A DNA stretch of 57,275 nucleotides from Ministeria vibrans ATCC 50519. Its lineage: Eukaryota; Protista; Filasterea. The translations under genes were made by a program, and so were the position numbers. This document shows positions 440-48,295 of the stretch, piece by piece (position 1 is the first letter of the stretch; the number at the start of each line of letters is the position of its first letter). Location: contig CALSCP010000515.1 in NCBI GenBank assembly GCA_943704425.1, forward strand, positions 21,914 through 79,188. The letters are read 5' to 3'. The notes beneath the pieces are model-generated. The model did not search any database, was not told where the DNA came from, and was given only the letters and a program-made list of their open reading frames with translations.

Positions 440-3400
440 TCACTCTTGCAGACGCAACTGGTACGTTCGCCCCGGCTTTTTCAGGAGATAGCCCTACACA
501 CACAAACACAGACACAAAACACATACAATTAATGTAAACTATCCTTACTCGCGTAAATTCTTCATACTTGGGCATTCATGGTGTCCACCAAATCAAGAAA
601 CGACGTTTGCGGCCGGATACCATGTACTCCAGCCGTGTGTCGCAAGTCGTCGAGGGAAAACCTATTCTTGCCTGTCTCCTCCGCTTTACGACCCAAAATC
701 GCCACAAATCGCTTCACCATCGCCTGCTTGCTCATACCCGTTCCATTTTGCGACCTACTCTCAATAATCAATCACGAGCAAAATAAACTTCTGTAATCTC
801 CTCAGGTGTACGTACCTGTCAAAAGCGAGTCCACCAGTGCCGTCCGAGAATACATCGCACATGCTGTTGCGCATAATCTCTACCACATCCTCAGCATCTT
901 CCACAGTCACTCGCTCTCGCAACTCAAGCCGTGCACGCGCTACACACAAGTATTACACACAACACAAACACACTCAATCAACAAACAAAATCGTACTCCA
1001 TTTGCTTTAGCACTCACCTTCGGCCAATCGAATAAGACTCTCAAGTTGTCGCGTCGTAATTGGAGTACTGTCTTGCTTCTGGTACTTGCGACGGAGGTCC
1101 ACATAAAAATCTTGAAGGACCTTGCTTGCACCCGATGACAAGCGTGGATGCACATACTTGCGAGCGTACGCAATGTACTTTCGCAGCAGCGCCGAAGGTA
1201 TAGGGTCCTTCAGGTCGGAATACTTGAGACGCTCGAGAAGTGGTCGGCCCGACAAAGACGTCTCGTCCGTACCCTCTGCACCTCCTACTCCACATGTTGC
1301 TCCTGCTGCACTAGGTCCTGCTCCTGCTGGTCCCGCTGCAGCGCTTGCAGTTGCCCCGCCACGCGAGCCAAAAAAGGGTGAGGAGGCCACGCCTGCATCT
1401 TCGCCTCGAAGACTCAGCAGCTGCGACGAACTGAGCACGTGCTGCGACGTGGCCAAGCTCGCTGCCGTGGCACGCGCACGACGTGACAGATCCACTTTGC
1501 CCGCGTGAATGGCCATGACGTGCTCCGACAGTAGTCGGTCCATCTCCTCGTCGGGCTTGTCGAGCAGGATGAACACAAGGTCGAAACGCGACAACAGCGC
1601 CGAGCCCATGCGAAGGTTCTCCGACACCGTCTTTGCTTTGTTGTAGTGTCCGCCTACGGGGTTCGCCGCCGCAATGATGGACGTGCGCGCCGGCAAACTG
1701 CACACAATGCCAGCCTTGGCGATGCTAATACTCTGCTGCTCCATCGCCTCAAGCAACGCGTTGTGCTCCGCACCCATCTTGTCAAACTCGTCGATGCAAC
1801 AACAGCCTTGGTCGCCCAACACCAACGCGCCCGCCTCCAGCGCATAGTCGCCGCTCCCACCTTCCTTTATCATCGTCACCGTAAGACCACTGGTGGTCGC
1901 CGTGTTACCGCACACGTACACACCACGCGGCATCACAGACGTCGCCGCCTGCAGCATCTGACTTTTGCCCAGTCCCGGATCGCCAACAATAAGAATGTGC
2001 GGATCGCTGCGAATGGGCATACTGCTGCTGCTCGCACTACTCGTGGCACCACCACCGCCACCACCGCCTGCACCACCGTCCGCACCTGCGCCTCCGCCGC
2101 CACCACCACCGCCACGATGACGCCCGCCAAAGAGCGTCAAACTGATGCCCGCCTTGACCGTCTCGTGGCCGTAAATGGAAGGACAGAGCGAGTTGATGAG
2201 CAGCGCAAAGAGTCTCGGTTGGTTTTGAATCTCCTGAATCGCATAGAGGTCCTGCAACGAAAACTCCATAATGTCCACCGAGCCAGTGCCCATGGATCGC
2301 GCATTGCTCACGCTGTTGGCAAGAAGATACAGCACAAACATGTTCTTGGTGCCAGCCTTGCTCTGAGGCATCTTGACACCCTCTTGGGCCGCGGTCACCT
2401 TGACCTCGCCTGCAACGGTCACGACATCACCCGGGATGCACGAATCGACAAGACCCTCGACAAGCTCACACTCAATGGTGCGCGGGATGCGTCCGGCGTC
2501 CGCCGAGTCGTCGCTGATGATTTCTTGGACACGCACCGTTTGCCAGTCAATGGTGGACGTAATGGGCGACGCACGGTCTGGCTGAAACTGTTTGCTTTTG
2601 CAATCACCAATGCACTGCAACGGAGGTGCATACTTGCCGTCGACAAGACTCACCGGGTGCGTCTCCATGCACTTGTTGCACACAAACGCCATGCGAGTCA
2701 CCATTGGTTTGACATTGCTCACGCGAATTACTGTCCCACGAATACTCACAAAGCGTCCTGCATCAAATTAATGCAGAAGAATATAAAAAAACAAGGCAAA
2801 GGGTGCAGCGGAGCACGATGATAATAGTATTATTTTGTAATGTCTTCCGAGTGTTTGTCTTCTTACCAATCGAATTTGACTTGAGCTTGCGCACTGGCGT
2901 AATCTTGTCGTAGTTGTAGATGCGCACATACAGCTTGGGTGGCATTCGTGTAAAGAGGGGCGGCATTGTCGGCTCGGCGTACACCACTTGGAAAGCGGCA
3001 AAGCCAAAGCAGGCAAGTGCATAGGCGGGTCGTTCGCGCAGTTCGTCGGGAAGACCCGCCAGCGCACCTACGCACTCGGTAATGAGGTCCTGGTAGTCAA
3101 TGAGAATTCCGTTGTATTTCTCCACCGTCGCCTAGGTGTGTGATCAGGTGAGAATGTTTTTATATTTCTCTCTTGTTTATCCTAGTTGAGTATGTGTGAA
3201 AACACCTTGTTGATAAAATCAGGCTTGGCACGACAGTACTCCTTCAATGACCGAACGAGAGTACCCGCTTCGCCGTCTTCGTCAAATGCTACAAGATACC
3301 AGGAGGTGGATGAGCGCATCTGAGCGTAGAATGACACGAAACGTTTTCTCTTTTTCCATTCTTTTTTTTTTTTTTGCGTGAACGCGACGCGCGACTAACG

Positions 3401-3867: not shown

Positions 3868-6795
<2,928 letters not shown>

Positions 6796-7003
6796 AGTAA
6801 CTGGTTGATGTTCCTCAATGCACGATAGTATATAATAGTGATGAGTGACAATCATGTGCCACAGTATGTGCACATGAATACGATCAAAGATCAATTGGCA
6901 GAAGACAGATGGAACTCTCATAGAAATATTGTGTTGCTCTTTGTTTTGTATATTGTTTTGCTTTGTCATTGAGTACTCGATTCTTTTATATTCAATTTAG
7001 TTC

Positions 7004-10000
7004 ATGGCTTGCCTTCCGCCTGCGTCGAATTGGTACTGCGACTCACTCGCTAGTGAAGTGCATACTGATGACGAAGGGGTGCGTCGGTGTCTCGTGGCGT
7101 ACGCAGCAGCGCGAACTTCCGTGGTGATTCTTGATGCGACTCAGTCAACACAGTTGCGTGTTCTTTCGACCTTTGCTCTCTCGAGCCACCCCGATCGAGT
7201 GACGGGCGTTGCCTTCAACACCGAGGCGACAGTCCTTGCCACAAGCTGCGCCGATGGTCGTGTGCGTCTGTGGAACGCTCGATCGCGCGCGCGTCTCGTT
7301 GTTCTGCAAGACGCGCCGTCGTCGCTGTCCGCCGCCTCCGCTTCGTCCAAGACGCCAAAGCGTCGTCGTAAAGGCGCCCCTGCAAGCTCGAGCACAACCG
7401 AAGAAATGACCTGTGTCACTTTTTGCGCTGGCAGCACGCATGTAGTGGCGGGAACGTCGCGCGGCGCACTCATCGCGTGGAGTGTGGTGCGCCACGGTGA
7501 CTTTCAGCCGTCCGAGCCAGTCTCACTGGTGCTACCGGGCTCGTCCGTGGCAAAATTTGGACCGGTGACATGCTTGCGTGCAACCGGGAGCGACTGCGGC
7601 GACCACGGCAATCTTGTGGCGGCCGGCTACCGTGGTGGTGTCGTGCACATTGTCGATGTGGTGCGCAACGAAACGGTCCAACTGCTGCGCGGTCACGAAG
7701 AAGAGGTGCTATCACTTGCCTGGTCGCCACTCGCTTCGACGTCATCTCAGACGCAACTTATGCTGGCATCAGGCGCGCGCGATCGCACGGTGCGCGTGTG
7801 GAATGCCACAACTGGTGTGCAGCTCGCGTCCACTCCTGTGCCCCATAAAGGGGCGTCCAAGGACGAGCGACACTTTAGCCATCAGCAACAGCTGCAGCGT
7901 GTCTGGTCTGCAGTACTCTGGTGCGATTCTCATCGTCTTTTCATTTCCTCGCTCAGTGGCGACGTCTACGCCTGGTCACCTCCCTGCTGCGCGACGTTGT
8001 CGTCATCTTCGTCGTCGGTGGTGTCGTCGGCTTCGACAACCACCACCAAATCTGCTTCCAAAAAAGGCGGTTCGGCTCAGCTGACGCACCTCACCAAGCT
8101 GTCGGGTACACCGCACTCGCGCATCGTGTTTAGCATGTGTCGCACGGGCGTCGATCCGGAACGCACGGAGTTCCTCTCGACGAGCATGGACCGTCGCTTG
8201 GTGGTTTGGGACGGCACGTCGAGTGTGGGTGCGCTGTCGACCATTGGCTCGCATGTGAGTGCGATTGACGTGTCACCCGTCGACGGCAAACGTGTTGCTG
8301 TGGCCAGTGGCGACGCTTGTATCCGTTTGTGGTCGAGGACGGGTGCGACGGGCAGCGGCGACTGTGTGGTACTCTGGCGTGGACTTCAGAACAAGGTGGC
8401 TGCGGTGGCGTGGCATCCGCTCGACGAAAGTGTGCTTGCCTTTGGTATGGAAGACGGTCGTGTGGGCACATTTGATGTGTTCTCGCACCAGGCATGGTTT
8501 TCAGACGTGCGTCATGGCAACTCGTGTGTCTACACCGTGTGTTGGTCGCGAAAGGGCGAGTCGAGTCAGGCGATGGAGGTAGACAAAGGGGGCGAGGAGG
8601 AACAGGAGGAGATTGGATTGAGAGCGCGGGCGGTGCTATGGAGTTGCGGCGGTGACGGCATGGTGGTGCGACATGCGCGAGATGAGGGTGTGCGCGCGTG
8701 CAACGTCAACGAGTTGCTTGTGGGACCCAGAGACGACAACGACGAGTCGTCGCCAAGTATGGGAAGTGGTGGTGGAGGTGCAGTGATGTTGTCAAAGAGA
8801 AGCGACGTGAGGTTTGCGTATGACGTGCCGTCGCAAGTTGCTCTTGCCAGCACCACAGGCAGCATTGACGTGTACAATGCGTTGGCAGACGAGCGTGGAC
8901 CGTGGAGGAACGTCGCCCAGCTGTGCGGACACACACGGCGCGTCAATGCACTTGCCTGGGAGCGCAACGGCCGACGACTTGCCTCGGGCACGGACGACGG
9001 TCACATCCGTGTGCATCTTGTGCCCACCGCCGCATCCAGTGACACATGTATACAGAGTGTGCAGGCAGTGGCCGTGCTGCGCGGCCACTCGCGCTCCGTG
9101 ACCGACCTCGATTGGTGCTCAATGGGCCTGGCGTCGTCGTCGTACGATGGGACTGTCCAAGTGTGGAACCCAACAACGTCGGTTGCGCTCGACAATGATG
9201 CGCCGGAGCAGTTTGAGGGCACAGCAAATTTTCGCGGCCATGTGGGCACACGGGTGAGTACAGTGCGTTGGCAAAGTCACCATGCGCATCAGCAAGCGGG
9301 TATGCTCGTGTCGGCGGGCGACGATCAGTGTGTTCGTGTGTGGTCAATGACCGAGCAACCTCATCGTACGCCACCCGAGCTACCTTCACTCAAGCGCAAG
9401 GCACGACGAGCCGATGGCGAGTCGGATGCTGCCAGCGGGAATGGTGGTGGTGGTGGTGGTACGTTGAATGGCGCAACGGTAGTCGAGGTCGCGCAAAAGG
9501 AAGCGATGGAGAAGGAACAAAAGCGACGCAAGGTTCAGGCTTCCGAGTCTGCGAAGAAGAGGACGGTGAAGGACACGCAGTCGCGCGTGCCAGCCTCACT
9601 CGACGTTGCCCACGCGTCAATGACCGAGATTGAATCGGCTGTGTCCCCATCAACACTGTGGATGTACCAGGGGAACGTGCTTGCAGCTTTACGTGCGGCA
9701 CGCGAATCGCTCACTTCAGATTTGGTGGCGTGGAGCGCGAGTGCCGGTGAGGCGGTTTGGCGGGCGTGTGCGCGACTGTACGCGGCACAATTGCAGGCGC
9801 AGTCACGACCGCACGATGCCGTCGGCTATCTCTTGGCCGTTGGCGACGTGACGGCCGCCATTGAGGCGTATCGTAGTGCTGGACTGGACCGAGATGCGAT
9901 GCTTGTCGAACGAATGCAGGTGAGGCACACAGTCGTGTCGCAGGGTGACGCGCTGGTGGCTGAGTGGACTCAAGAGAAGGTAGAGCACCACGACCTCGTG

Positions 10001-10531
10001 CATGGCGCATGCTCCCTGCGGGGTCGGTCACTCGACCCGCTTCTAGATCGGCTGGCCAGGTGGGAGTGCGAAGGAGGCGGCACGGGAAGAAGCGCTGCGG
10101 GTGGTGTAGTGGGTGCGCTAGTGGCACTCGCTCGTGATTCAAATGAACACCACTATCGCGCTCTACTGAACACGCCGAATGTACCCCTGGCCATTATTGG
10201 TGCAGTGCCCTCTGAGCAGCTGTGGCAGAGCTTGAGTGACGAGAGTCGTGCGTGTCATTTGCGTGCACTTGTATCATGCTCGATTGAAGAGCTGCAGATC
10301 ACCGACCAAGTTGTTCAAACGATGGTGTTTAATGAGGTTAGCGAGAGAGAGATTGTGTGTGTGTGTGTGTCTGTGTATGTGTGTCCTGATACTTAGAGCC
10401 ATTTCATTTGTTTTTTGTAGAGCCTGTCTGCTGCAACTGCGTCGACCAATGCGCGCCTCTTGCTTGAGCGTGTGCCTAAGGGGACCCTCCTTGCTGCTAA
10501 GATTGGTGCGTTTCTCAAGACGTGTACATGA
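7004..10531 (+). CDS. GEMIN5: Gem-associated protein 5 (WD40 repeats plus TPR-like region), SMN complex
   Basis: N-terminus LPPASNWYC resembles Gemin5 LPPSPNWY; many WD40 repeats; LSTSMDR, AFGMEDGRVG; C-terminal YLLAVGDVTAAIEAY; one intron 10337-10420, stop at 10531. Confidence 0.82.
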
Positions 10532-14472: not shown

Positions 14473-16718
14473 ATGTTGCGTGTGGCTTCGCGATCGTTTG
14501 TGACTTCCTTGTCGCGAGCATGGACCAGAGTACGCCTCCCCTCCCCCTCCCCCAACACAACGCTCGTCGAGGCTGTAGACTCCCTCGCCTGCAAGTGTCC
14601 CTTCCCAGCTCTCCTCCCGCTGCTTCTCCGTGGTCCTACGCGCTGTGTGCAGTCCCTTCTGCGCCGTCGTGGTCCTTTTTCGATTTTTTCAGTCGTTGTC
14701 TGAGCGCCTTGTTCTCTCCTTTCACACACAGGGTATGGCCTCTGCATCGGCTGCCGTGGATACCGACTCGAGCATCGAGCGGACCGAGTTCCCTGGCGCT
14801 CGTCCGAGCGCGTACACGTCGAAACTTCAGTTGATAAATCCAGACGTAAGTCGCTTTTTTTTTTCTTCGCTTTTTGAGACGGTGCAATGAGTCCCCTTTC
14901 TGCTGTACTCGAGCTGCCGTGTGTCCTTGGACCTTTCACACGTTTTCTTTCACTCACATTCCTTTTTTTCCCTCTCTCTTCCGTTTGTCCAGCTCGACGC
15001 TCCTGCCGAGTGCTACCGCGTCATGAACCGCTTTGGCGAGCTTGTCCCCGGCGCCGAAGAGCCCAAGGTTCCCATAGACTGCGTGACTTCTTCCCCAAAC
15101 TGACTCGGTTGTTTTCTCAGTTGTCGGAAGAGACGCTCGCCAAAATGTACACAACCATGGTCAAGTCGGATGAGATGGACCGGTATCTCAACAAGATCCA
15201 ACGAATGGTACGCACTCTGTTCCACCCACCACCCACTGACAGCTGGCCCTGTTACCTTCCTACCCACAAACCAGAACAAAATCTCCTTCTACATGACCAA
15301 CTACGGCGAGGAGGGCACGCATGTGGGCAGTGCCGCCGCTCTCAGTCCCGACGACCTTGTCTTTGCTCAGTATCGCGAAATGGGTGTCCTCATGTACCGA
15401 GGCTTCTCCATTCAACAGGTTTCAAAGATTTTTTGTGTCCATTATTCGTTTTCGCGTCTCTTAAACGCCCAAACTATTTTTGTTCTTCAGTTTTTGCATC
15501 AAAACTTCTCCAACGCGTCCGATCTGGGCAAAGGACGACAGATGCCGGTTCACTATGGATCAAAAGAGCTCAACTACGTGACCATCTCATCGCCACTGGC
15601 TACGCAGCTTCCACAAGCGGTCGGATCAGGTTAGACACTCCAACCCTAACTCCGAAACCCTAACCCTAGCCCTGACGCAGCGTATGCTTTCAAGCGTGAT
15701 GGCTCCAAGCGTGCTGTCATCTGCTACTTTGGCGAGGGTGCTGCCAGTGAAGGTGATGCCCATGCTGCCTTCAACTTTGCTGCCACTCTCGAGGCACCTG
15801 TCATTTTTTTCTGGTGAGGATTCATTTTTGTTTTTGTACGTCAAAGTGATTATTTTTATTGTTTGATGCGTAGCCGTAACAATGGATTTGCTATTTCAAC
15901 GTCAACAAAAGATCAGTACCGCGGAGACGGAATTGGTACTCATACTTCTTACTTCTTACTCACTCACTCGCTTACGTATTTTTATTCACCCAATCAATCA
16001 ACATCAGTGAGTCGCGCAAAGGGTTATGGAATGGACTCGATCCGAGTGGACGGAAACGATGCATTTGCCGTGTACAACGCAGTGGAGGCAGCTCGTGCTA
16101 ACGCAGTCAACCTTAACCGACCCACTCTTATTGAGGCAATGACATACCGGTACACGCACCATTTTTATTTTCTCTCTCACATTGACTCATTTTTTCTCTT
16201 TGGGGGGTTTAGTGGCGGTGACCACAGTACAAGCGATGACTCGTCGCGCTACCGTGATGGAGAGGAAATTGTCCACTGGAAAGAGCGCAATCACCCGATT
16301 ACGCGAATGAGACTGTTCCTTGAAAAGAGAGGCTTGTGGTCGGACCAGCAAGTACGACTCCCCCAAGCAAAACACATGTTTTGGTTGTGCCTCAACTACA
16401 AATTCCCTGTAGGAGGTGGAATTGCGCAAATCGGCCGAGAATGACGTGAGGCGTGCCATCAAGGTCGCCGAGAAGACTCCCAAACCTGCACTCGACGAAA
16501 TGTTCACCGATGTGTACCAAGAAATGACGCCCGAGCTCAAAGAACAGGTGCTCTTCCTCTCTCCATCCCACTTTGTCTCCCTTTTGTTCTTTTTTCCCTC
16601 CTCTCTCGCGTTGTTCTTTTCGCTCCTCTCTCATCACTCCCTGTCTATCTACATCTAGTACGCCGAGGTGCTGGAGCGTGTCCGCAGCAATCCTGACGTG
16701 TATGGTGCACACCACTGA
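14473..16718 (+). CDS. BCKDHA: Branched-chain 2-oxoacid dehydrogenase E1 alpha, mitochondrial
   Basis: Presequence-like start; [35 protein letters not shown] (ThDP motif), [20 protein letters not shown] phospho-loop. Confidence 0.95.
15642..15672. repeat. Degenerate telomere-type (CCCTAA) repeats inside a 51-nt BCKDHA intron
   Basis: aaccctaactccgaaaccctaaccctagccc between donor 15630 and acceptor 15680. Confidence 0.6.
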
Positions 16719-16826
16719 TTTTTTATATTTTCCAATGAAGATTTTTGATTTTTTGATTTTTGAATATAAATAATGTATTATTCAATATAACTTTTTCCTT
16801 CTTCTTTACGCTTGTTTCATCTTCGT

Positions 16827-18867
16827 ATGCTCGTGGCACGCGTTCGTCAACCACTTCGTACGTCTCGTTTTTTTGTCTTCTTTTTTTTTTCTTTTTGCTT
16901 TTTTTTGACTTTCTGTGTCGTCTGTAGACGTTACAACGTGTCAGCGCGCCTTTGCAACAGGGCTACAGAGCGCTAGCAGCACCGATAAGGTTGCCCCAAG
17001 ACCGATTGTGACTCACAGTCTGAAAAAGGTTTGTTGAAAAATCTCTTGTGCCCTCTCCCTGCCTCCTTCTTCGCCTCCTGGGATCCGATCGGGCCCCGCC
17101 TGTGCTGCACTGCCTGCGTTTCTCGTGTGTGCGTCTCTCTTGTTGTGTTCTCGATTGCTTATGGGGAGTTTTTTTGGCGAAACGATTTCATTTTGGTTCG
17201 GCTTTTGCAGTGGGAGGCTGGTCCCTTGACCAAGGCTGGCCCTGGCGGTCGGTCGAGCGTGTCGGGGCTCAGCGTCACCGTCTTTGGCGCCTCAGGCTTC
17301 TATGGGCGCTACGTGGTGAACAGGTAAAGCGCTATTATGATTAAATTTATTACACTCGTCTCAAACGATGCTGTTGTCCACTGCAGACTGGGCCGATCCG
17401 GCACACAAATTGTGTGTCCGTACCGTGGTGATGAGTACGACGTGGGCCACCTCAAAGTAATGTGTGACCTGGGTCAGCTGCAGCTGTTCCCTTTCAGTCC
17501 GCGCGACGACGCGTCTATTGAGCAAATGGTGCAGCACAGCAACATTGTGGTAAACCTGATTGGCCGCGAGCACGGGACACGCAACTTCTCGGTGGATGCG
17601 ACGCAAGTGGAGGTCGCACGGCGTATTGCGCGGGCGTGTGCGCGCACCAACGGTGGCGTGCGCCAGCTCATCCATGTCTCCCAGCTCAACGCCCATCCGC
17701 AAAGCCCGTCGGCCCTCCTGCGCGCCAAGGCTCATGGCGAAATCGCCGTCCGCGAGGAGTTTCCCGACGCCACTATCCTCCGCCCAGCAGACACGTTTGG
17801 CGCTGAGGACCGGTGAGAACCCGTCAACGATGAGGAGAGATAGAGACCAATTATTGTGTGACTGAGACCCTTTCTCTCGTATTTTCTTGTTGTCGTACAC
17901 ACATATATAATATACATTATGTATAATATATAGGTTTCTGCATTACTTTGCACAAAAGACCAGTGGAATGATTCTGAGACGGGCTATTCTCGGACGACAA
18001 CAAGCAAAGGCGCTCAAACAGGTTGACACACAGAAAGACTCGAGTCACACCAAACCACCCGCTCAATTCACTCTCTTCTTCTTTTGTCATTTGATTTCTT
18101 CAGCCGGTGTATGTGATGGACATTGCCAATGCAATTCACAACGCAATGCAGAATCCAGAAACAATCGGACAGACATACGAGCTTGTCGGGTAAACTAAGC
18201 AAAAAATATAACCTTTCCATTTTTCAACGTTTTTCTTTTTCGCTCATGTCGTACTTTTTTCTCCTTGTGTCTTTTCTTTCTTCTTTCTTTCACTTTGTGT
18301 CGTTGCCACTTCTTTATGTTTTCCTTTCCTCTATATCACTTTATTCTTTCTCACTCCAGTCTTTTTTGTTTTCCTGTCCTATGTTACTCACCCACTTCCA
18401 TTTCACTTGCTTTGTAGACCAAAGGAATACACCACGTTGGACATTCTGACTCACGTGCAGAAGCAGATTGTTGTGCCTGAGCACGTTACGATTGTGCCCG
18501 AATCCCTTTTGTCGTTTGTGGCTCGTCAGGTCGAAAAGTGGCCTCTCTACAATCCCCTCATGTACCCCGACAGAGTCATTACGGTACACATTCTACTTCC
18601 CTTCTTTTTGATGCCGTTAGACTTTTCTTTTCTTCCTTGCAGAGAGCACTGTCGGACAAGACGACTGAGGGACTTCCGGGTCTCGCTGATCTAGGTATGA
18701 AACAATGCACACACACAGACACACACACACCCACACATAATTATGTTGTTTCTTGTCTTTCAACAGGAGTGACTCCGACCCGTATGGAACGTGTCTCGCT
18801 TCCCTTCCTGCGCTACTACCGCAACGCCCGCGTCTACGAACAACCGTATCAGCCTTCGACAGACTGA
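16827..18867 (+). CDS. NDUFA9: NADH dehydrogenase 39-kDa subunit (complex I)
   Basis: [80 protein letters not shown]. Confidence 0.95.
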
Positions 18868-19587: not shown

Positions 19588-22500
19588 TTCTTTTTTTTTC
19601 TTTTTCGTTTTTTTGACCTGACACGATTCTAACCAATTTTGGGGATGGGGGGGTTCCTTTGATGCAGGCAACGACGGCGCTGCGCAGCCCGTGAGCCCAC
19701 CAGGATCGCGACGCTCGTACCCCCCGCCGCCGCTGGTGCCCTTTTCCATGGCGCCCGGCGCTCCGGCGTCGTCCGCATCGTCGGGCGGCGTCCATCAACA
19801 GCAGCCCAGCCTGCAAATGCAGCCACCACCACCACAGCAGCAGACGCAGCCGTCCATGCTCCCCGCCTTCCCCTCGGCCGGCTACACACCCGTCCCCCAC
19901 GCCTTCCTGCCGCGCCCCTCCGCCGCGATTCCCCCCGACGCTCCGCCAATGCGTCCCTTTCACGCGTACGCCATGTCCAGACCCTTTGCCCCAGCCCCAA
20001 TGCCGCCGTCTCCCTCCACAGGCTCGCCACAGGTAACGCCGTCCCCTTTCACAGTGCCCCCAGCCCGCTTCGCAGTCCCTCACTTTTCACCTCTTCCAAA
20101 TCGCCTCATCATCCTTTTTTTTTTCTCTTCGTTTTTCCAACAAACAAACACAGCAGGAAAACATCCCCACCCCAATCTTCATCAATCACTCCCTCATCCT
20201 TCCTCTTTATAGCCCGCTTTCAACTTTATGGCATCCAAACAATTCAACCCTGCTTTTATGGCACCAGTATGTGATGTGCATGAATTGGTAATGCGCAATG
20301 TAACATAATTGTATTGTTTTTTAGCATCTACAACAACAATTCATGCAAATGCAACAACAGCAGCAGCAATCCCAACAACAACAGCAGCACCACCAATCGC
20401 AGCAGCAACATCCATCCCAGCAACCCTTCTTCAATCCTCAGCAATTCCTCGCGCAACAGCAGCTTCTCCAACAGCAACAAATGCTTCTGCTCGCACAGCA
20501 ACATCAACAGCAGCAACATCAACATCAACAGCAGCAGCAACAACATCAACAACAGCAGCAACATCAACAACAGCAGCAACATCAACATCCTCATGCCGCC
20601 CACTCGGGCCCTCTTTCGCCTTTCCACCTCGCTCAACCGTCGTTCCCCACCGGACACCCGTCAGACCGACTCCCCACCTCCCCTTCGTCTGGCCCTGACG
20701 TCAACTTCAAGCGAAGACGCACTAGCATCAGTATTGGCGATATGGGTTCTCCCTCTACCTCCCATCAGCTCGCCGGATATCCTTTCAATGGCTCTTTGTC
20801 GTCGCCCGCCATGGCTGTGCCCACCTCAATGCGCTCGCGCTCCTTTAGCGAGTCTGAAAAACCACGCATTGGCCTCGCTCACGGCTCGTCCACTCCTCTT
20901 GGCTCGCCCTCCTTCCAGGCCTTTGCCACCGTGGAAGGTGTCCCTACACCTCCTCTTGCCGGTGCTGTCATGAACGCTGTCGGCTCCCGTCCCGTCAATC
21001 CCGCTGCCTCGGCCGTCGCTCACATGGCTGCTATCAGTAACAACCTCAACAACCAGCAAGTAACCAATGCGAGCGAGTCGACCAAGCCACAGCAACAACA
21101 GCAACAACAGCAACAACAGCAACAGCGTCGTCGTTCGGGCCAGTCCCCTCAGCACAACAACAGCAACAACAACAACGGCATGAACAGTGGTCCTCAATCG
21201 CGGCGGGACTCGCCCGCCCAGCTCGCTATCCGTCGCAAGAATAGCATCAGTACCAACTCACCGGGCATCTGGCACCCCGCACAGATGGCCGCGTCGCCCG
21301 GTTTGCTGCAGCAGCGCCTTGCACCCGGCTCACCCATGGCAACCACCGTCGCCAGTGCACACAGCCACCTCCTGCACGAGTCAGGCCCCCACGTGCCCCT
21401 CTCCGTTCCAATGGAGACACGCCTGCGCACTGGCATGTTTCCCGTGAGCTTCACCGATGACACGCCCCTCCTTAGTGTTCCCGTTGTTGACACAAGCGTG
21501 GAGAACACAGATGCGCTTCAGCAGAACACTGTGCCCTCTGCCATTTTGTGGCCTGACAGCGGCGCCCTCTTCGACGAGCCACCCACCAAAACGTTCCCTC
21601 CACGTCGTGTCATCATCTGTCCACAAGCAAGCGACGGCTCGCGCTTGATGTCTATGTATCTCAACCACAACAAGGCGGGCGAGCCGGAGCGCCGTATGCC
21701 CATTGGCTCGCGCATCGATGCAATCCATGAGGACGGGCACTGGTATGCGGGGCGTGTGCGCCGTCGCGATGGCGACGACTGTATCGTCTCAGGAGATCCC
21801 TTGGTAAGAGAGGAATGTTAGATATCTCGTGATTGATTTTAATTCTTGTCATTTTACTCTCCGTGTGTATAGTACTTGGTGCACTATGAAGGATGGGGCG
21901 TTGAGTTTGACGAGTGGATCCCCGCGAGTAGCTGTCGGCCGTCCCAGGGCCATGCAATCGTCGGTCCCGATGGCCCCGAAGACGACCTTCACTGGCGCAA
22001 TATCAACCATGTTGGTACGTAGCATAGCCATGTTGTTGCTTTTCTTGATCGTCCCACTTGTTTGTTTTTTTTTTTTTGTTTTTTTTGTACGTGTAGTTCT
22101 TGAAACTTGCAAAACAACACAAACTGCAATCATCTACGACGGCAACATGCTCAAGGTAATTTCTCATTCTTCTCCACTCTCAATCACTCACTGTTCTTTC
22201 CTTGTCCGCGCTTCTTGGTTGATTGATGTAGCACGACTGTACATGCGGACAAGATGTACATCCCGAACAGCCCGATCGTCTTGTGAGCATCTTGTACAAC
22301 ATGAACAACCAAGGACTGCTCGACCGCTGCATTCGTCTGCTTGCCAAGGAAGCCAGTCCCGAAGAACTCGCCACTGTTCACACAGCGCAGCATGTAAACA
22401 CTTATGCCATCTCCAATGTCGGAGTGCTGCCCCCTGAACACGAAACTATGGAGTGTGGTGGAATTGGTATGAGATATGGCGTTTTTATTAATTGTAGTGA

Positions 22501-24126
22501 TCCACTCATTACTGCACGCAATGTAGGACTCGCCTGTGATACCATTTACAATCAAGAATCAACACCCATGGCTGCGCGTCTCTCGGCCGGATGTGTCTCA
22601 GAAATGGTAAAAGAGCAAAGCAGATTTACGTTGAGCATAGACTAACACTAACAATTGTCCCGCGTTGCATTGTCAGGTGCGACGCGTGTGCCAGGGACAG
22701 TGTCGCAATGGTTTTGCCGTCGTGCGCCCACCGGGACACCACGCCGAAGCCAACGAGGCACTTGGCTTCTGCTACTTCAACAATGTCGCTGTGGGCGCCC
22801 TCCTCGCCCGTAGCATCCTTGACTTGCCCGCCCGCATTCTCATTCTGGATTGGGTACACTACTTTTTTTTTTNNNNNNNNNNNNNNNNNNNNNNNNNNNN
22901 NNNNNNNNNNNNNNNNNNNNNNNNNNNNNNNNNNNNNNNNNNNNNNNNNNNNNNNNNNNNNNNNNNNNNNNNNNNNNNNNNNNNNNNNNNNNNNNNNNNN
23001 NNNNNNNNNNNNNNTTTTTTTTCTTTTGTGTCGCTTTTCCTATTCTTATTCTTCACGGTTTTCAGGACATTCACCATGGCAACGGCACCCAGAACATCTT
23101 CTACCGGTCAGCCGACATCATGTACATTTCGATGCACCGCTACGACGAAGGCAACTACTACCCGTACACGGGCGCACTGGCCGAGACGGGCGAAGGGGCT
23201 GGCGAAGGCTTCAACATCAACATCCCGTGGCGCGGTGACCGTCCTATGGGAGACACAGGTGACCACTATTGCTTGTATGTAGTTTTCTTGAATGTTCTTA
23301 TTCTCCTCCTGCAACAGAGTACATGAGTGCCATGCTGCATATTATTCTACCGCTTGCCCGTCTCTTCAATCCGAGTCTGGTCCTGGTCAGTGCGGGTTTT
23401 GATGCGGCCAACGGCGATCTCATTGGCGGCTACCGGGTGTCTCCGCAAGGTAAGGCTGACGTAGCACCGACTTGCGTTGTGTGCGAGGTCTGACGCTCAA
23501 AACGACTCTGCTGTGTAACACAGGATTTGCGCATATGACACGCGCTCTAATGGAACTTGCTGGCGGTCAAGTGATACTGACGCTGGAAGGTGGGTACGAC
23601 AAGGAGTCGCTGGCGCTGTCGGCGACGGCGTGTCTGACGGCCCTGTTGGGCCATGAAATGGGCGCTATCTCAAGCTCTAACCGCTCGGCGTTGGATCGTG
23701 GCATTGGTACCCCCTTGCCGACTGCCATGGCGGTATGTCGATTCGGGTGTGTGTGTGTGTGTGTGTTTCTGTTCTGATGTGCAATGTGTTTTTTTTTTCT
23801 CGTCAGGTGATGAAGGAAGTCTTGCAAACCCAACAAAAATACTGGCCTGATCTTGAGGTAGACCCACACGCTCCATTCTCCGCCTCATCATTTACTCTTG
23901 TTTGTAGATTCCCGAAGGCCAACGCGGCTTTGACGTGCCTGCCGAGTACTATTCGTCACCCTTCCGGCCCCCAATGGGCGGTGCCCAGTCGCGTCCTCAG
24001 AAGCGGGTTCTTCAGGTACCACCCTTTCTCCATTACTCTTCCACTTCACCTTCTTTTCTCACACTGTATTCTGCGTCGTCGTGTGTCTTGTGTTTCAATT
24101 AGGAGAAGAAACGATACGATGTGTAG
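19147..24126 (+). CDS. Class IIa-type histone deacetylase with P/Q-rich N-terminus and a Tudor/chromo-barrel domain
   Basis: YDGNMLKHDCTCG..HPE, CGGIGLACDTIYN, NGFAVVRPPGHHAE, GFCYFNNVAV, DWDIHHGNGTQ, SAGFDA, LEGGY; first exon MAEHGESPVSTEK inferred to splice to 19668; assembly gap 22873-23013 lies in an intron. Confidence 0.85.
22873..23013. other. Assembly gap (N run) in a poly-T intron; a second short gap is at 39400-39409
   Basis: N bases. Confidence 0.99.
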
Positions 24127-41046: not shown

Positions 41047-41245
41047 GGTGTCGGACGTGGCTGCAACGCAAGAAAATTAATTAATTTTTATTTTATTTCG
41101 AAACAATCAATATAATATTCATCAATATTATTGTCAGGTTGACTAATATTAAATAAGATCATGACCTCATTGGCTCATTCACGCTCATTCACTGATTATT
41201 GATATTTGATCATTCAAAAAAAAAAACAGTTTCGACTGCTTCAGC

Positions 41246-44200
41246 ATGGGTGGGAAGTCGTCAAAGGGCCAGGTGCAAGCGCTTCTTGTTGAGTTTCTCT
41301 CATCATCTTCGTTTTTTTTTGTTTTTGTTTTTTCATGACAGGACCTCGAGAAACTGATTCCTTCCCTGCAAACGGGAGACATTGTTCTCATGTCAGGCAA
41401 GACAAGCGGTGGTTTTATCATCCGAACCTTCGAAGGGTATTCTGCAGATTCGTCACTTTCCCGTCATGACGTTGTTGTCTCCGCAGATCTCCCTTCTCCC
41501 ACATTGGACTGGTGTACCGGCGCCGAAACGAGGACGGCATTGATCAGGTTTGCGTGATGGAGGCGTCCACGAACCATGCGGGTCTTGTGGACGTGGAGAC
41601 TGGCGAGGTGAGTCGCGGCGTCGAACTTCTCGACTTGCGCGAGAAACTGCTCTCTGGCTGGTACGACGCCGTCGCCTTTCGCCAATTGATTGTCCCCGAT
41701 GACGTCCGCGAAGAGATTGCTCCGCTTCTCTACGAGTTTCTCGAGAAGACGCGAGGGTAAGTCACACAAAGCGCCTTCCGCCCTCAAACCGCAGCCTGAC
41801 CCTTATTCTGCCACGTTTGGTGTGGCGCAGCCTTCCCTATGAGCAGAGTATGCTTGAGATGGCCAAGTCCGCCTACGACAAGTTCCTCGGCGAGAACCAC
41901 TACGAGAACCTCTCGAGCATCTTCTGCTCTGAGTTTGTCGGCGCTGCCCTCATGCACATGGGTCTGCTGCCCAACCGAATCTCCCAAGATCGCTATTTGC
42001 CATCAAATGAGTACTCTCCGGCGGTATTCCCATTCGCTCTCGCCTCTCATCCGAATGACTGATTATTTTGCTTTTTTTTTTTTTTTTTCGCTTTAGGACT
42101 TTACGTCACGACGATCACTTCCCTTGCAACGTGGAGCAATGTACGGACCCGAGATTGACATGTATGTACCGCCAGGTCTCAAGAAGGTACCGCTCGCTAT
42201 CGGAAATGGCTCAACTCATCGCTGATCTTCCTTATTTTCGCTTTGGGTTCTTATTCATTATAGCTTCGCGCGCCGAAATCCATTGCAAAACCCGCAAAGA
42301 AAAAGAACAAGGTGAGTGCGGCCGAGGCTCTTCTTGAGCCTGTAGCGCCGGCCGAGGATGCGACGGCTCTGTGGAAAGCGCTGTGCATCAACTTGTTCCG
42401 CCGACCCACAATGAAGCAGGTAAAACAGATTGTTGTTGTTTTGCGCCTCTCCTCTTGCGCCCCCTTTTTTTCTTTACTACAATACTCGGCTCTTTTTGCC
42501 ACGTTCCTCGTGTTTTCCCAAAAACAGTACGAGAGTCCGTTTTCACCTGAGCCACAGAGCGTGTTGCAGCTGTGGGAGTTTTTCCCCTTGTAACCGCCAA
42601 CTTTGAGTCTTTGCAAGTCAAATTATGGATTTGCAGAGAATTACGTTGGTGAAATATCACTAATAGTTAGTATTCATTTTTTTGTTTTGTTTGTTTTTAT
42701 TGATGATTATGGTCGTTGTTAAAATTGTTACGTTGTTCTTCTGCTTGCTGATGGTTTGGATAGATTCGAACGTATTGGAATGCGTTCGACGCGAATGAGA
42801 ATGGGCGATTGGAGCGCAGTGAGGCGACGGAGTTTCTGCAGCGGTTGCATGCGGATTTTGGAGAGGAAGGGACGACACCCGACATGGCGTTTCTGGCGCG
42901 TGTGGAGCACAAGATTACGGGGACGATTGCATGGGAGACGGTGCGCCGGGTGCTGGTGGGGGCGACAGACTACGGTGTGTGCGCACTGGTGGTGACCAAA
43001 TTGCGCGGGGCGTTCAAGAGCGCCAAGTGTGAGGGTCCCACAGGTCTGCTGACCAAGGCAGCCGCGCGCGATGCGGTGGCAGTGCCGCTGCTGGCGCGGA
43101 ACAATGTGCACGCGGGCAGCAAGCTGCACAAGCGGGCCATGGCGGCCGTGGATGGCCTTGCAGTCGACCCGGTGCCCTTTGAAGAGTTTGTGCGTGTGTT
43201 TGGGCCTCTGTACCAGGAGACGGTGCTGCTGCACGACCACGAGAACATCTCGGGACTGCACGCGCGCGTTGACCCACACAAGGACCGCATGGCTATCGAC
43301 GGTCACGTCAAGTCGTTTGCCCCCGAGCGTCTCTATGTTGATGCCAAGTTTCTCATTGATGGCCAAGAGACTTTTGCTGAGATGGCCCAACTCATTGAAG
43401 TACTGACAAAGTTTTTTTTTTTTTTTTTTTTTTGTTCTACTCACACACACACACACACACCCTCTTTTCTTTTTCCGCGTGTGTAGAGCGCGACGACGTC
43501 GATCATGTGCTCGTTCTGGCGGCTGTCACCGGAACTGGCAATGGTGCGGACACGCGAGGCAGTGCCCGCAGAAGACTCTCACATGGGGACACTGCTGCGG
43601 CGCAAGGCAGAGCAAGGCGTTCGCGTCTATGTGCTGCTTTTTGACGATTTGGATGCTGCGCTCGATCTCTTTCCCGAAGAGAACAAGGCAGTAAGTGAAT
43701 GAATGAATAAAAGAGAGGAGGGGAAAAGAAAAAAAGTGATAGAGAGAGGAGGGGAAAGGAAACAAAGTGAGAAAGAGAGGAGGGGAAAAGAAACAAAGTG
43801 ATAGAGAGAGGAGAGGGAGGAAAGGAGACTAAACGATAGAGAGAGGAGAGGGAGGAAAGGAGACTAAACGATAGAGAGATGGATGAGGAAGAAAGAATAT
43901 AGGAAGACAAAACTCAAAAGGAAATAGAGAGAGAGGGTTTGTGGACTGAGCAGTTTTGACCTGTGTAGTATCTTGAGGGTCTTCACGAGAACATTTCAGT
44001 CATTATTCATCCGGAGCAGTTTCCCATCCTGTGGTCTCACCATCAAGTACATAACTAAAAAAAAAATTGCAGAAACAGAACACGCAGCTAACTTTGTTAT
44101 ACTTTTTCTTTTTTTTCGGATGGTGATAGAAATTTCTGATTGTCGATGAACAAGTGGCTGTGTTAGGAGGACTCGATTTTGGAGTGGGCCGCTTCGACAA

Positions 44201-46010
44201 TTGCGAGCACGTCCTGTTTGACGAGACGGGCGGAAATATGTTTCCGGGCATTGACTATGTCAACGCAAAGACAAGTCAGATGACACACACTCACACACAC
44301 TCGTAGAAGAAGAGTGCGCTACTGACACCTTTTTCTCCGTCTCTATCATGGCAGGTGGCTATCCATCACGAGATGCCTATAGCACCCCGCGCACGGATTA
44401 CATCGACCGCAGCACTATGCACCGCTTCCCCTGGCACGACATTGACGTGCGCGTCAATGGTCTCGCTGCCTTTGACGTTCTCGTCAATTTTGTACAGCGC
44501 TGGAATGACCACCGTCCCCGTCTCAATCGGTGCCTTTTTTTTTCCACTGTCTTGTCGTTGGCTTTTTTCTTGGGTGTTGAGACTCTGCCTTCCTTTTTGT
44601 CCTGTGCAGATCGCGCTATCCGGAACTCAAGGCCCCAAAGGAGTCGTCGTACACGAGCGACGTGTCGACGGGAACGCACTCGGTCCAGATCGTCCGGTCT
44701 GCCTGTGAATGGTCCATTGGCCATCTCCTCAAGAGTCGTGTCGAAGTGTCTCTTTACGAAGTACATGACACTCCCTCCCCGTTCAATTCTTGCACTCAAG
44801 CTCTCTCCTCACTCCTCTTTGCCTTAGTCGTACATCCGTGCCATCAATGCGGCCGAGCACTACATCTACATTGAGCAGCAGTTTTTCATCTCGAGCACGG
44901 CCGGCGGTGGTGTGCAGAACCGCGTAGCTGAGGCCATTTACCAGCGCATCAAGTGGGCCGTGCAGAACAGCAGGACCTTCCGTGTCATTTTAGTCATTCC
45001 CTTTCCAGAAGAGACTGGTCTGGCTGCGCGCGAGATTGTCCACTGGACGTGGCGCACCATCTTTCGCGGTGGCCAGTCGCTTATGGAGCGTGTCGAGGAG
45101 CTTGTGCAGGGCACGGACCGCACCATAGAGGATTACCTCGTTGTGTGTTCGCTGCGCACGTGGCAGAAAAATCCCAAGGACGACGCTCACGTTGCGACCG
45201 AGCAAGTGTTTGTGCACGCCAAAGTATGAAATTGCAATGTTGTTGAGCGAACATGGGCGCTTTGTCCTCATTCAGGTGCTCTCTTTTTGTTTGCTACGTT
45301 CAGGTGATGATTGTCGACGACCGCGTCGCAATTGTGTCGTCTGCCAATGTCAATGATCGCTCTATGATTGGCTCACGCGACTCTGAACTGGGAGCAGTTG
45401 TAAGTGGAAAAACAAATAGAGGGGTTTCCCACTGCCCAGCCACACTCACCCATACCTACCATGACAGATTCGTGACGACAAGATGACAGAGACACTGATG
45501 GATGGCGGTGCAGCGTCGGTGGGCACATCAATCAAAGCCTTCCGTACGCGTCTGTGGCTCGAGAAGCTTGGCCTGTGCATGTGCAGTGAACACGAGAAGC
45601 TCATAGAGGATCCCGTTGTGGATGCAGTCTATCGCGACATCTGGCTTGCGACTGCTCGCAGTAAGTGGAATCGTGTTCATTTCGGATTGCTTACACACAC
45701 GCACCCACATGAAAACATCTTTTGTAGAGAACACGATCATTTTTAACAACGTCTTCCCTTTCATTCCGTCCAACCAACTGCGCACCCCCCAACAAGAAGA
45801 GGTAGCCCTCTGCTAAGTTAAAAAAAAAATGTGTCATAAACTTGTACTCTTTCCTAGGCGGCACCCAAAGCACCGCGTGAAGTGGAGCGTCTGGCCGATG
45901 TGAGCGGGTCGCTGTGTTTGAGCCCTCGCTTCTACATGGCCGATGATAAGTCTAATCCCATCGAGTGGATTATCGAGACCTTCCGTCCCTTCCGCAGACT
46001 GTTTCAATGA
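41246..46010 (+). CDS. Fusion protein: N-myristoylation motif + permuted papain-like NlpC/P60 (YiiX/YebB-type) domain + EF-hand + phospholipase D (two HKD motifs)
   Basis: MGGKSSK; TGDIVL, SPFSHIG, IFCSEFV; DANENGRLERSE; WSHHQ|KFLIVD..GGLD, PWHD, IYIEQQFF, FVHAK|VMIVDD..SANVNDRS.GSRDSE; all joinable in frame. The PLD part is very secure, the fusion moderately so. Confidence 0.75.
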
Positions 46011-46087
46011 AGAAGAACGACATTTAATAACGGAGAAAGGCCAAATTTTTTAATCATTGGGTACAAAAAAAAGAGAGGGAGAGATAT

Positions 46088-48295
46088 TTAGGAGACCTGA
46101 GCGGCCAAATTGTGATGAAGCGACGAAATGCGATTGGTCCAGTTGCGCAGATTGGCATACTTCGCGGCGTCCTCGCTCTGGGGATCGAGAAGCAGCACAC
46201 CGTGAACCTGGTCGATGCGCCCCCGCACAGCCTCATCCAGCACCAGTGCCGTCAGCAGCGACTCCACTTCTGTCTCGTCGATGTTCAGTTCGTCCGATAT
46301 GAACGACAGTCGGATGCGCGTATATGGTTTGATCAGTTTCAAAATCACCTGTAAATCACATGAATTATTATATCAATGAATGTGCAGAGGCATCAATAAA
46401 CTATTAAACGATACTCGCTGACCTGTGTGCGAACGTTCTTCTTAAGCTCCTCAATGTACTTTCGGATGAACGAGTCGGCCATGATGGTCTTCGCGTTGCG
46501 CTTGAGAATCTTTTCAAACTCGTGTACTTGATTACGTTGATACCTACCAATCGGAAGGTTGTCAGTCTCGCGTATTCTCTTATTGTCACTCTTGCCCTTC
46601 TCCCATTGCTCTCTCTTGATCCTCTCACACTTTGTGTTATGTCTCTCCCTTCTCTCTATTTCCTCTCTCTCTCTCTCTATCCGTATAACGAGTCGTACGA
46701 TGCAACTAAGTTGGTCATGGCAAGAATCTCCGGATCGTTTTTGTACGGCTTGGTCTCGGGAGAGTCAAAGGGATCGATGGTGCTTTGCATGAGCATGTTG
46801 GCGAGCACAAGGTACTTGAGGCACTGAATTCGGCGCGGCGACCCACTCTCGTCATAGTTCTTAAAGGCCTAAATTGATGTGTGAATTACAGGTTGGACGC
46901 CCACTCGTTCCATTTGCAACAGTGTTCTACCTCAAAGAAGTCTGTGTGTGCTTGGTCGTATTGGTCTTCGGACAAGTGCATTTTGCCGCCACACTCGCGA
47001 ATGGTCCCCAGAATGAGCGGATGCGGAATGGCTGACTTGATTTTCAGTGACTTCTCATAGATGGCCTGTTGGTTTGATATACATGCACACACACACAATG
47101 ATTAGTGTTGGTCACAGACCGATGCGTTTTTTTTTTTGGCGTACCTTGAGTTTCTTGTTGTTTTCTTGTTCGGTGTACATTTGGATTTCAAGCGCGTAAA
47201 TTTCGAGAAGCTGTGTGCCCTTCTTCATGTCATCACTGCCATCGTCCTGCTGGCACGAATCAACTAGTTGCTTGATGATGCGTCCCATTGCAGAGTACTC
47301 TTGGCGGTCGAAGTGAAGCTAAAGAGATCGTTAAGTATCCGTCTCAAACACGACATTTTTGCATATATTTATGCGAATAATGTGCACTTTCGTGCGTCAA
47401 CAGAATAATAGTACAATAATAATTCTAATAATAATTCTAAATATTGCTACCTTTCCCAGCTTGAGATTGGTCTTGAACCAAAGACGTTCGTTCTTTGCTT
47501 CTTGCAGGGCGGAGAGAGTGGTCTCGTAGAAGTTTTGCAGAAGCTCTCCGTCGGGTGTGGTGGAGATGCGATCGAGAATGCCATTGATGGACTTCTCACT
47601 GTAGTTGCGTGTCACAGCCGACTTGATGTACGTAAGCAGCTGCTTGTAGCGCTTCATCATCTTGTCGTGTTCGCCCCGCCGAAAGTGCAGCTTGATCATT
47701 TGCTTTAGTGCCTTGAATCCCCAGTCGCACTTCTCTTGTTCGAGCAACAGAACCTAACAATAAGTAAAAGACGAAGAAGAAAAGAAGAAGAACCCATATA
47801 ATAGTTAACAATAAGAATAAAGAAATAGACAAACAAGAATAATAATAATAAAAAATATACTATAATAATTATTATTGTAATAATAAGAATAATAATTATT
47901 TTTCGTGATTGTGTTTGATGGGGAAAAAAAGACGTTTGTTGCACTGACCTGTTCAAACGCCTCAAGCGCCGCCATCTCGTCGTCTTCCTTGAGCGACTTT
48001 GCAGTGTAATACCTGAGAGCGGGGGCAAGCGTCAGCAGCCGTATGGAGCGTGTGTCTTGCTCAACAGACAGCGAAAGAGTCACAGACGCAGAAACGAAGT
48101 TGAACTCTCTTCTGTGGTTGTTCTCCTACTGGTTTTCCATGTCCACGTCAGGCTCGCTTCCCTCGTCGTCTTCGTACTCAAGACCGTAGTCCTACAGAAC
48201 AGAGGATGTCGAATGAGATGCGCAGAGAGCGAATGGAGAATGACAATCTGTTGCGCTACCTCGTCGTCGTCCATCATAAATTCATCGTCGCTCAT
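46088..48295 (-). CDS. COPS2: COP9 signalosome subunit 2
   Basis: [63 protein letters not shown] domain IKPYTRI. Confidence 0.96.

Follow-up and report, generated by a model that had tools for sequence, protein, structure and literature searches.

Permuted NlpC/P60 enzymes of the YaeF/YiiX type are widespread in bacteria, poxviruses, and protists. The C2-type phospholipase D (PLD) enzymes of plants carry a Ca2+-related C2 module upstream of the PLD core and are targeted to membranes through their N-terminal region. Here we describe a gene of the filasterean Ministeria vibrans ATCC 50519 that joins a domain assigned to the first family to a PLD core. It lies on contig CALSCP010000515.1 of assembly GCA_943704425.1, within a stretch of 57,275 nucleotides (positions 21,914 to 79,188 of the forward strand) that was analyzed as a whole and is referred to below as the window; coordinates are those of the window unless another contig is named. 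A single spliced mRNA covers exons 2 to 17 of this gene and encodes the YiiX-type domain, an EF-hand loop, and PLD.

Among the PLD enzymes, the closest described systems are mammalian PLD1 and PLD2, which have the order PX-PH-HKD (PDB 6ohm and 6u8z). They share with the window protein two HxKxxxxD (HKD) motifs and a SANVNDRS-type motif after the second one, and exon 13 of the gene aligns with them over its whole length. They differ at the N terminus, as no PX or PH domain was detected in the window protein, whose N-terminal ~450 residues begin with an MG start and continue with a YiiX-like domain, a basic linker, and an EF-hand. Dictyostelium PldB is targeted to the membrane by EF-hand-like motifs together with a PH domain (PMC13187810). 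Both PldB and the plant C2-PLDs resemble the window protein in placing a Ca2+-related module upstream of the PLD core and in having an N-terminal region for membrane targeting, which in the window protein is predicted. However, PldB has a PH domain and the plant enzymes have a C2 domain, and neither has a second catalytic domain.

The described counterparts of the N-terminal domain are BcPPNE of Bacillus cereus (PDB 3kw0) and YiiX of Escherichia coli (PDB 2if6; PF05708, MEROPS C92). In the YiiX crystal a fatty acid is bound non-covalently in the hydrophobic S1 pocket, and the structural paper proposed that the protein is an amidase acting on fatty-acyl amides (PMC3142127). Members of the permuted family are commonly fused to membrane-targeting modules (PMC3142127), and a permuted NlpC/P60 toxin is a phospholipase (PMC12994826). 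The LRAT/PLAAT (H-RAS-like suppressor) acyltransferases belong to the same permuted superfamily and are likewise concerned with lipid acyl chains (PMC3142127; PMC12994826), but they form another family, in which the Cys motif is NCEHF.

Results

Transcripts of the gene. The gene runs over 17 exons from 41246 to 46010 on the forward strand (Table 1), and its exons sum to 3132 bases, or 1043 codons and a stop codon. The reading frame is open through all exons, with no stop codon in any of the in-frame exon pieces, and all 16 introns have GT..AG ends. The motifs that the initial annotation had named from the sequence (MGGKSSK, SPFSHIG, FCSEFV, a basic linker [KPAKKKNK], DANENGRLERSE, and two HxKxxxxD motifs) are all present. 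All or part of the gene stretch was found in 20 public sequencing runs. Several of these hold 0.52 to 0.58 of the sampled words of the stretch, which is near the exon fraction of 0.64 (3132/4901 bases), and two hold ~0.9.

Contigs from three RNA runs of different studies (X1, X5, and X6) and from the DNA run X19 were compared with positions 41200 to 46100. The contigs of X1 and X5 contain 13 GT..AG joints in the span from exon 2 to exon 17, and 10 of these are also found in X6. The 13 joints comprise 41436>41487 and 41756>41831, 42186>42264 (in X1, X5, and X6), all nine internal joints of exons 8 to 17, and 42419>42764, the joint between the N-domain half and the PLD half, which the initial annotation had singled out as the splice to be checked. 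This last joint, which the contig listing gives as 42417>42762 with a cut of +2, is present in X1, X5, and X6, and the RNA contigs of the three studies that skip intron 6 have depths of 182, 32, and 5.6. Joints 42023>42097 (X1 and X5) and 43399>43487 are not listed directly and were deduced from adjoining contig pieces. Inside intron 6, the RNA contigs contain a single unspliced fragment (42485 to 42670) at a depth of 2.5, versus 182 for the spliced form. One contig of X5 (contig 11, 3133 nucleotides [nt]) extends from exon 2 to the poly(A) region (41339 to 46034) and includes both gene halves, and X1 has a loose end of 20 A residues behind 46038. None of these joints occurs in X19, in which the introns are kept and a contig runs unbroken over 42099 to 43134; since it lacks the joints and runs through the introns, X19 represents DNA and X1, X5, and X6 represent RNA.

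These results bear out, for exons 2 to 17, the claim that the N-terminal domain, the EF-hand, and the PLD lie in one spliced frame; rather than a separate PLD transcript with its own start, the contigs contain a spliced product that spans both halves. The frame of exon 7 is closed by the TAG of its own splice acceptor, and the first Met in this frame comes only after the EF-hand loop; exon 7 therefore cannot start a protein of its own.

Apart from introns 6 (344 nt) and 8 (278 nt), the introns are 50 to 87 nt long. Intron 8 contains a GA-rich repeat on a scale of 40 nt (43700 to 43900), where the summed depth of the bin reaches 246,042 in the DNA run versus ~200 in the flanks. The repeat is also very abundant in the RNA runs and is a member of a family with a huge copy number, and further GA/CT and CA arrays of a similar kind are found throughout the window.

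The 5' end and the predicted lipid anchor. The initial annotation let the frame begin at MGGKSSK. The sequence is there and fits the M-G-x-x-x-S/T myristoylation consensus through its Gly2 and Ser6, whereas the joint of exon 1 to exon 2 (41272>41342) is seen in no contig and can only be deduced. The sole contig that covers this region, from X1, is unspliced over 41244 to 41435 and retains the 69-nt intron 1, and the X5 contig stops at 41339. The ATG at 41246 is the first one past an in-frame stop (41207 to 41209) and has A at −3 and G at +4. The frame of exon 2 is closed by a TGA at 41336 to 41338, yet its first 16 residues (..LQTGDIVL) are kept in the homologs, in BcPPNE, and in YiiX, so that this splice or an equivalent one must exist. 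Exon 1 and intron 1 end in the same three bases, CAG (41339 to 41341 in the intron), which is the expected branch point of the spliced and unspliced paths in the assembly graph, and we infer that the spliced path, of ~30 nt, is a short tip of the kind that assemblers discard. MGGKSSK is quite probably the true N terminus. One homolog (P0017) starts with MGNKSSS, and an MG start thus recurs in this YiiX-like branch.

The N-terminal domain. Judged from alignments and from the modeled fold of a homolog, the N-terminal domain is of the YiiX/YaeF type and not an LRAT/PLAAT-type acyltransferase, and its active-site residues predict that it is catalytically intact. Searches, alignments, and fold predictions were run on single exons or on homologs, and an exon-wise scan is less sensitive than a scan of the whole protein. 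In a profile alignment, the His of SPFSHIG, the Glu of VMEAS, the Tyr of LPYEQ, and the Cys of FCSEF align to His49, Glu64, Tyr127, and Cys154 of BcPPNE, the catalytic residues named in PMC3142127. The His precedes the Cys, which is the order expected of a circular permutation. A profile built from the window exons and the homologs matches PDB 3kw0 at an E value of 5e-14 and PDB 2if6 at 5.5e-4, and exons 2 to 5 align with the homologs in order.

When exon 3 was used as the query of a HMMER scan against 1.84 billion representative proteins, only 28 matches were obtained. Among these, Cymbomonas (a green alga), Guillardia (a cryptophyte), and Ancoracysta are the named sources, and the remainder are metagenome contigs, some of them with neighbor genes of holozoan type. 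The eukaryotic YiiX-like proteins of Guillardia theta (L1JIY7), Ancoracysta twista (EP00164_P003477), and Cymbomonas tetramitiformis (KAK3273858) have the same motifs and are 37 to 59% identical to exon 3. The homologs appear to be membrane-associated, by way of a C2 domain, a membrane tail, or an MG start, but none has a PLD or an EF-hand. Some relatives (P0017 and P0002) have two tandem YiiX-like domains, the first of which lacks the catalytic motifs.

The assignment to PF05708 (Peptidase_C92, YaeF/YiiX) was reached through the homologs only, which score 15 to 27 bits against a cutoff of 27 (one reaches it); no Pfam model matched the single exons of the N-terminal domain, the six frames of the genome gave no match to this model, and the ESM Atlas gave a weak lead to it (score of 0.88). 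The fold was assessed by proxy, on homolog P0015 rather than on the domain of the window protein. An AlphaFold2 model of P0015 (predicted local distance difference test [pLDDT] value of 76), made from an alignment (A1) that included the window exons, had only 3kw0 (probability of 1.0, TM scores of 0.56/0.66) and 2if6 as Foldseek matches in the PDB, and no LRAT or PLAAT chain was among the matches listed. The Cys motif is FCSEF and not the NCEHF of the PLAATs. The initial annotation had proposed a permuted papain-like domain of either the LRAT/PLAAT or the YiiX kind; the permutation and the YiiX kind hold, and the LRAT/PLAAT kind does not.

The window domain thus has its His ahead of its Cys, as BcPPNE and YiiX do, and shares with them all four catalytic residues and, in the modeled homolog, the fold. 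However, these are single-domain bacterial proteins, whereas the window domain belongs to a eukaryotic branch with ~15% identity to them, contains an insertion (E.STN..GL.D...G.V..GVE), and forms part of a multidomain protein of 1043 residues. The 29.7-Mb assembly contains one gene of this branch. A weak second match, on contig C2097 (E value of 0.08), was not confirmed by tblastn.

The EF-hand. The entering helix of the EF-hand straddles joint 42419/42764 (..MKQ|IRTYWNAF) and is followed by DANENGRLERSE, a canonical 12-residue loop with D at position 1, D/N/S at positions 3 and 5, G at position 6, a hydrophobic residue at position 8, and E at position 12. This pattern arose in 98 of 20000 shuffles of the exon translations, and the loop aligns to those of secretagogin. 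A degenerate partner loop (EHKITGTIAWET) follows ~35 residues downstream. In a single-sequence model of exon 7, which is poor as a whole (pLDDT of 46), helix-loop-helix pairs are modeled at pLDDT values of 58 to 79 and helices flank the loop. The predicted EF-hand loop is borne out by a sequence pattern that is rare in shuffles, though its Pfam score is below the threshold. No homologs of exon 7 of 117 to 371 residues were found, and the ~120 residues before the PLD core are without detectable relatives.

The PLD half and its paralogs. The claim of a complete PLD with both HxKxxxxD motifs is confirmed by the motifs themselves, by Pfam, and by matches to PLD1 and PLD2. The Pfam PLDc model scores 27.4 bits on exon 14 (cutoff of 21.9) and 16.1 bits on exon 10. 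Among PDB sequences, exon 13 matches human PLD2 at an E value of 3e-14, PLD1 at 1.8e-13, and a 1099-residue chain named "Phospholipase D" (7v53) at 1.4e-8, with no further match at 0.01 or better, and the catalytic region resembles PLD1 and PLD2 and not the plant or bacterial enzymes. As the initial annotation had stated, PX, PH, and C2 domains appear to be missing: the Pfam scan, made exon by exon, found none on any exon piece at E values up to 1, and the same PX model does detect a paralog on contig C871. Both HKD motifs are interrupted by phase-0 introns adjoining the Lys codon (H-Q|K-F-L-I-V-D and H-A-K|V-M-I-V-D). The introns at these positions could be ancient or could record an internal duplication of the PLD fold.

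The assembly contains two further PLD genes. The one on contig C871 (about 6240 to 9790, reverse strand) has a PX domain (25 bits, above the cutoff) upstream of the core in the same 1495-residue open frame and, from its sequence, is apparently the organism's PLD of the classical PX type. In the one on contig C238 (about 14990 to 17900, forward strand; L018:2990-5840), the 713-residue open frame opens with some seven repeats of the form Cys-x2-F/Y..CxxC..H and an acidic run, and the PLD core follows immediately. The N-terminal modules on the PLD cores of this organism are thus interchangeable and comprise PX, Cys/His repeats, and, in the window gene, the YiiX-like domain with the EF-hand.

Search for the fusion in other organisms. 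None of the 28 representative homologs of exon 3 has a PLD partner, and none is longer than 605 residues. No PLD exon lies within 10 kb downstream of the YiiX-like gene in five metagenome loci and on a 750-kb contig carrying homolog P0003, and the lists of neighbor genes of P0004, P0007, and P0024 contain no PLD partner. A scan of viral contigs for the fusion was empty, and a region search with P0016 returned 5 proteins, again with no PLD partner. These negatives are weak. The protein libraries also lack the full-length protein of the window gene itself, so that coverage of this lineage is poor. Within that limit, the suggestion that no described protein has this architecture agrees with the sequence searches and the literature searched, and the architecture of this expressed gene is not described in those sources.

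Neighborhood of the gene. The neighboring genes are ordinary ones. A PCI-domain gene lies downstream on the opposite strand, and genes for a DEAH helicase, a RhoGAP, ribophorin I, a Gemin5-like WD40 protein, and MCM8 are found further out in the window. The MCM8 helicase gene has a 580-residue open frame with best matches in corals, other animals, and Capsaspora (52 to 65% identity) and no close relative in the database; its top match is flagged as contamination in a sturgeon assembly. The gene for the 1130-residue WD40 protein, which has a Gemin5 TPR domain, is intron-free and stands beside heavily spliced genes, so that intron density differs sharply between adjacent genes of the window. A masked run of N, which appears as X in a pair of overlapping open frames, falls within an apparent histone-deacetylase-like gene.

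Table 1. Positions of the parts of the YiiX-EF-PLD gene and of other features of the window
Feature	Position	Strand	Basis or remark
Exons 1-9	41246-41272, 41342-41436, 41487-41756, 41831-42023, 42097-42186, 42264-42419, 42764-43399, 43487-43690, 43969-44046	+	
Exons 10-17	44130-44274, 44355-44529, 44610-44760, 44828-45223, 45304-45399, 45468-45660, 45728-45801, 45858-46010	+	
Exon 1, MGGKSSKGQ	41246..41272	+	Sequence; Gly2 and Ser6 match N-myristoylation consensus
Exons 2-5, YiiX/YaeF-type permuted NlpC/P60 domain	41342..42186	+	Homolog alignment, family profile; TGD motif in exon 2
Predicted active-site His codon	41500-41502	+	SPFSHIG
Predicted active-site Glu codon	41560-41562	+	VMEAS
Predicted active-site Tyr codon	41838-41840	+	LPYEQ
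Predicted active-site Cys codon	41925-41927	+	FCSEF
Exon 6, basic linker (KSIAKPAKKKNK) and beginning of EF-hand entering helix (..MKQ)	42264..42419	+	Sequence
Intron 6, between the two gene halves	42420..42763		344 nt, GTAAAA..ATAG; skipped in RNA contigs
Exon 7, EF-hand pair, ~120 residues without family match, beginning of PLD core (..YVDAKFLIDGQETF..)	42764..43399	+	
EF-hand Ca2+-binding loop DANENGRLERSE (predicted), in exon 7	42788..42823	+	Sequence
Exons 8-17, PLD1/2-type catalytic region	43487..46010	+	Pfam PLDc, PDB matches; stop codon 46008-46010
HKD1, HQKFLIVD	His 44041-44043, Lys 44130-44132, Asp 44145-44147	+	Split by intron 9
HKD2, HAKVMIVD	His 45215-45217, Lys 45221-45223, Asp 45316-45318	+	Split by intron 13
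3' untranslated region, short	46011..46038	+	Poly(A) addition site near 46038
MCM8 helicase gene	1007-2749	-	
WD40 protein gene with Gemin5 TPR domain	7004-10396	+	Intron-free
Masked N run	~22800-22950		

Discussion

With moderate confidence, we read the locus as one gene for one membrane-directed lipid enzyme of 1043 residues with two catalytic centers that are predicted to be intact. In such an enzyme, the PX-PH targeting module of PLD1 and PLD2 would be replaced by an N-myristoyl and basic anchor, a Cys hydrolase or transferase domain that binds fatty-acyl groups, and a Ca2+ sensor. Acting at the membrane, the PLD half would remove the head groups of phospholipids to give phosphatidic acid, and the YiiX-like half would draw on the same lipid pool and attack an ester or amide bond of a fatty-acyl group. 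We hypothesize that one Ca2+-modulated protein would make two cuts in membrane lipid, one at the head-group phosphodiester and one at the fatty-acyl bond, and we assign no order to them. The coupling of the two lipid reactions is purely conjectural.

A number of points weigh against this reading. Pfam PF05708 has no match on the window's own exon pieces, and Pfam EF-hand_7 scores the loop at only 16.3 bits (E value of 0.013) against a cutoff of 30. The exon 1-exon 2 splice, on which the myristoyl anchor depends, appears in no contig. To our knowledge, no enzyme of the YaeF/YiiX family has a proven substrate, and an intact active site does not prove that both domains act on related substrates. 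Finally, no second organism with the YiiX-EF-PLD fusion was found in the protein, metagenome, and viral searches, and conservation therefore cannot argue for functional coupling.

It is possible, though unlikely, that the YiiX-like domain, the myristoyl group, and the EF-hand mainly replace PX-PH as a lipid-binding, positioning, or autoinhibitory module, with the Cys chemistry lying outside any shared pathway. The three different N-terminal modules on the PLD paralogs of this genome would fit such a role, as would the non-covalently bound fatty acid of the YiiX crystal (PMC3142127) and the targeting of Dictyostelium PldB by EF-hand-like motifs and PH (PMC13187810). However, the four catalytic residues are kept in the window protein and in its homologs, which would be unexpected for a pure binding module.

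Enzymes of the LRAT/PLAAT branch of the permuted NlpC/P60 superfamily make N-acyl-phosphatidylethanolamine (NAPE). The initial annotation had offered, as an example, a scheme in which the N-terminal domain acylates phosphatidylethanolamine to NAPE, from which the PLD half would go on to release N-acylethanolamine (NAE). Both domains, predicted to be intact, are indeed present on one chain. We nevertheless consider this scheme improbable, as the domain is of the YiiX/YaeF type, no LRAT/PLAAT structure is among the fold matches listed, and the Cys motif is FCSEF; the analogy to NAPE synthesis of the PLAAT type is therefore without a family basis. Furthermore, the amidase proposed in the YiiX structural paper (PMC3142127) would act after the PLD step and not before it. 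An amidase step after PLD is at least as plausible as the NAPE-to-NAE scheme.

More speculative, and very improbable in our view, is a YiiX-like domain that strips proteins of N-myristoyl or further acyl groups, perhaps its own anchor among them, and so acts as a release switch for PLD; the window protein and homolog P0017 both start with the MG..S consensus, but in many homologs the MG start is absent and C2 domains or membrane tails are present. The reading as two genes or an assembly chimera, with the N-domain and the PLD as separate products and the joint between them artefactual, is the least credible of all and is already largely refuted: intron 6 is the longest of the gene and contigs cannot reveal transcript starts, but the identical GT..AG joint is found in three studies at full contig depth, one contig covers both halves, the frame of exon 7 is closed with its first Met past the EF-hand loop, and an independent DNA contig bridges intron 6.

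A doubtful but far-reaching proposal takes the fusion as a true Rosetta stone. In that case, YiiX-type enzymes of eukaryotes would act on a fatty-acyl bond of the very phospholipid-derived molecules that PLD handles, for example, in the turnover of N-acyl-phosphatidylethanolamine to N-acylethanolamine or of phosphatidic to lysophosphatidic acid, and a single protein, Ca2+-gated and myristoylated, would carry out both steps of a lipid-mediator pathway. If true, this would provide the first defined substrate class for the YaeF/YiiX family, for which the main clues to function have been the fatty acid in the YiiX crystal and the fusions to membrane-targeting modules.

The gene also suggests that a PLD core can run without PX-PH, and, together with the PX-PLD and the Cys/His-repeat PLD of the same genome, it points to an exchange of the N-terminal control modules of PLD. 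The joining of a YiiX-type domain with a predicted intact active site to a PLD1/2-type enzyme in an expressed mRNA directs experiments to membrane phospholipids, and the gene is thus a testable lead on the function of YiiX-type enzymes.

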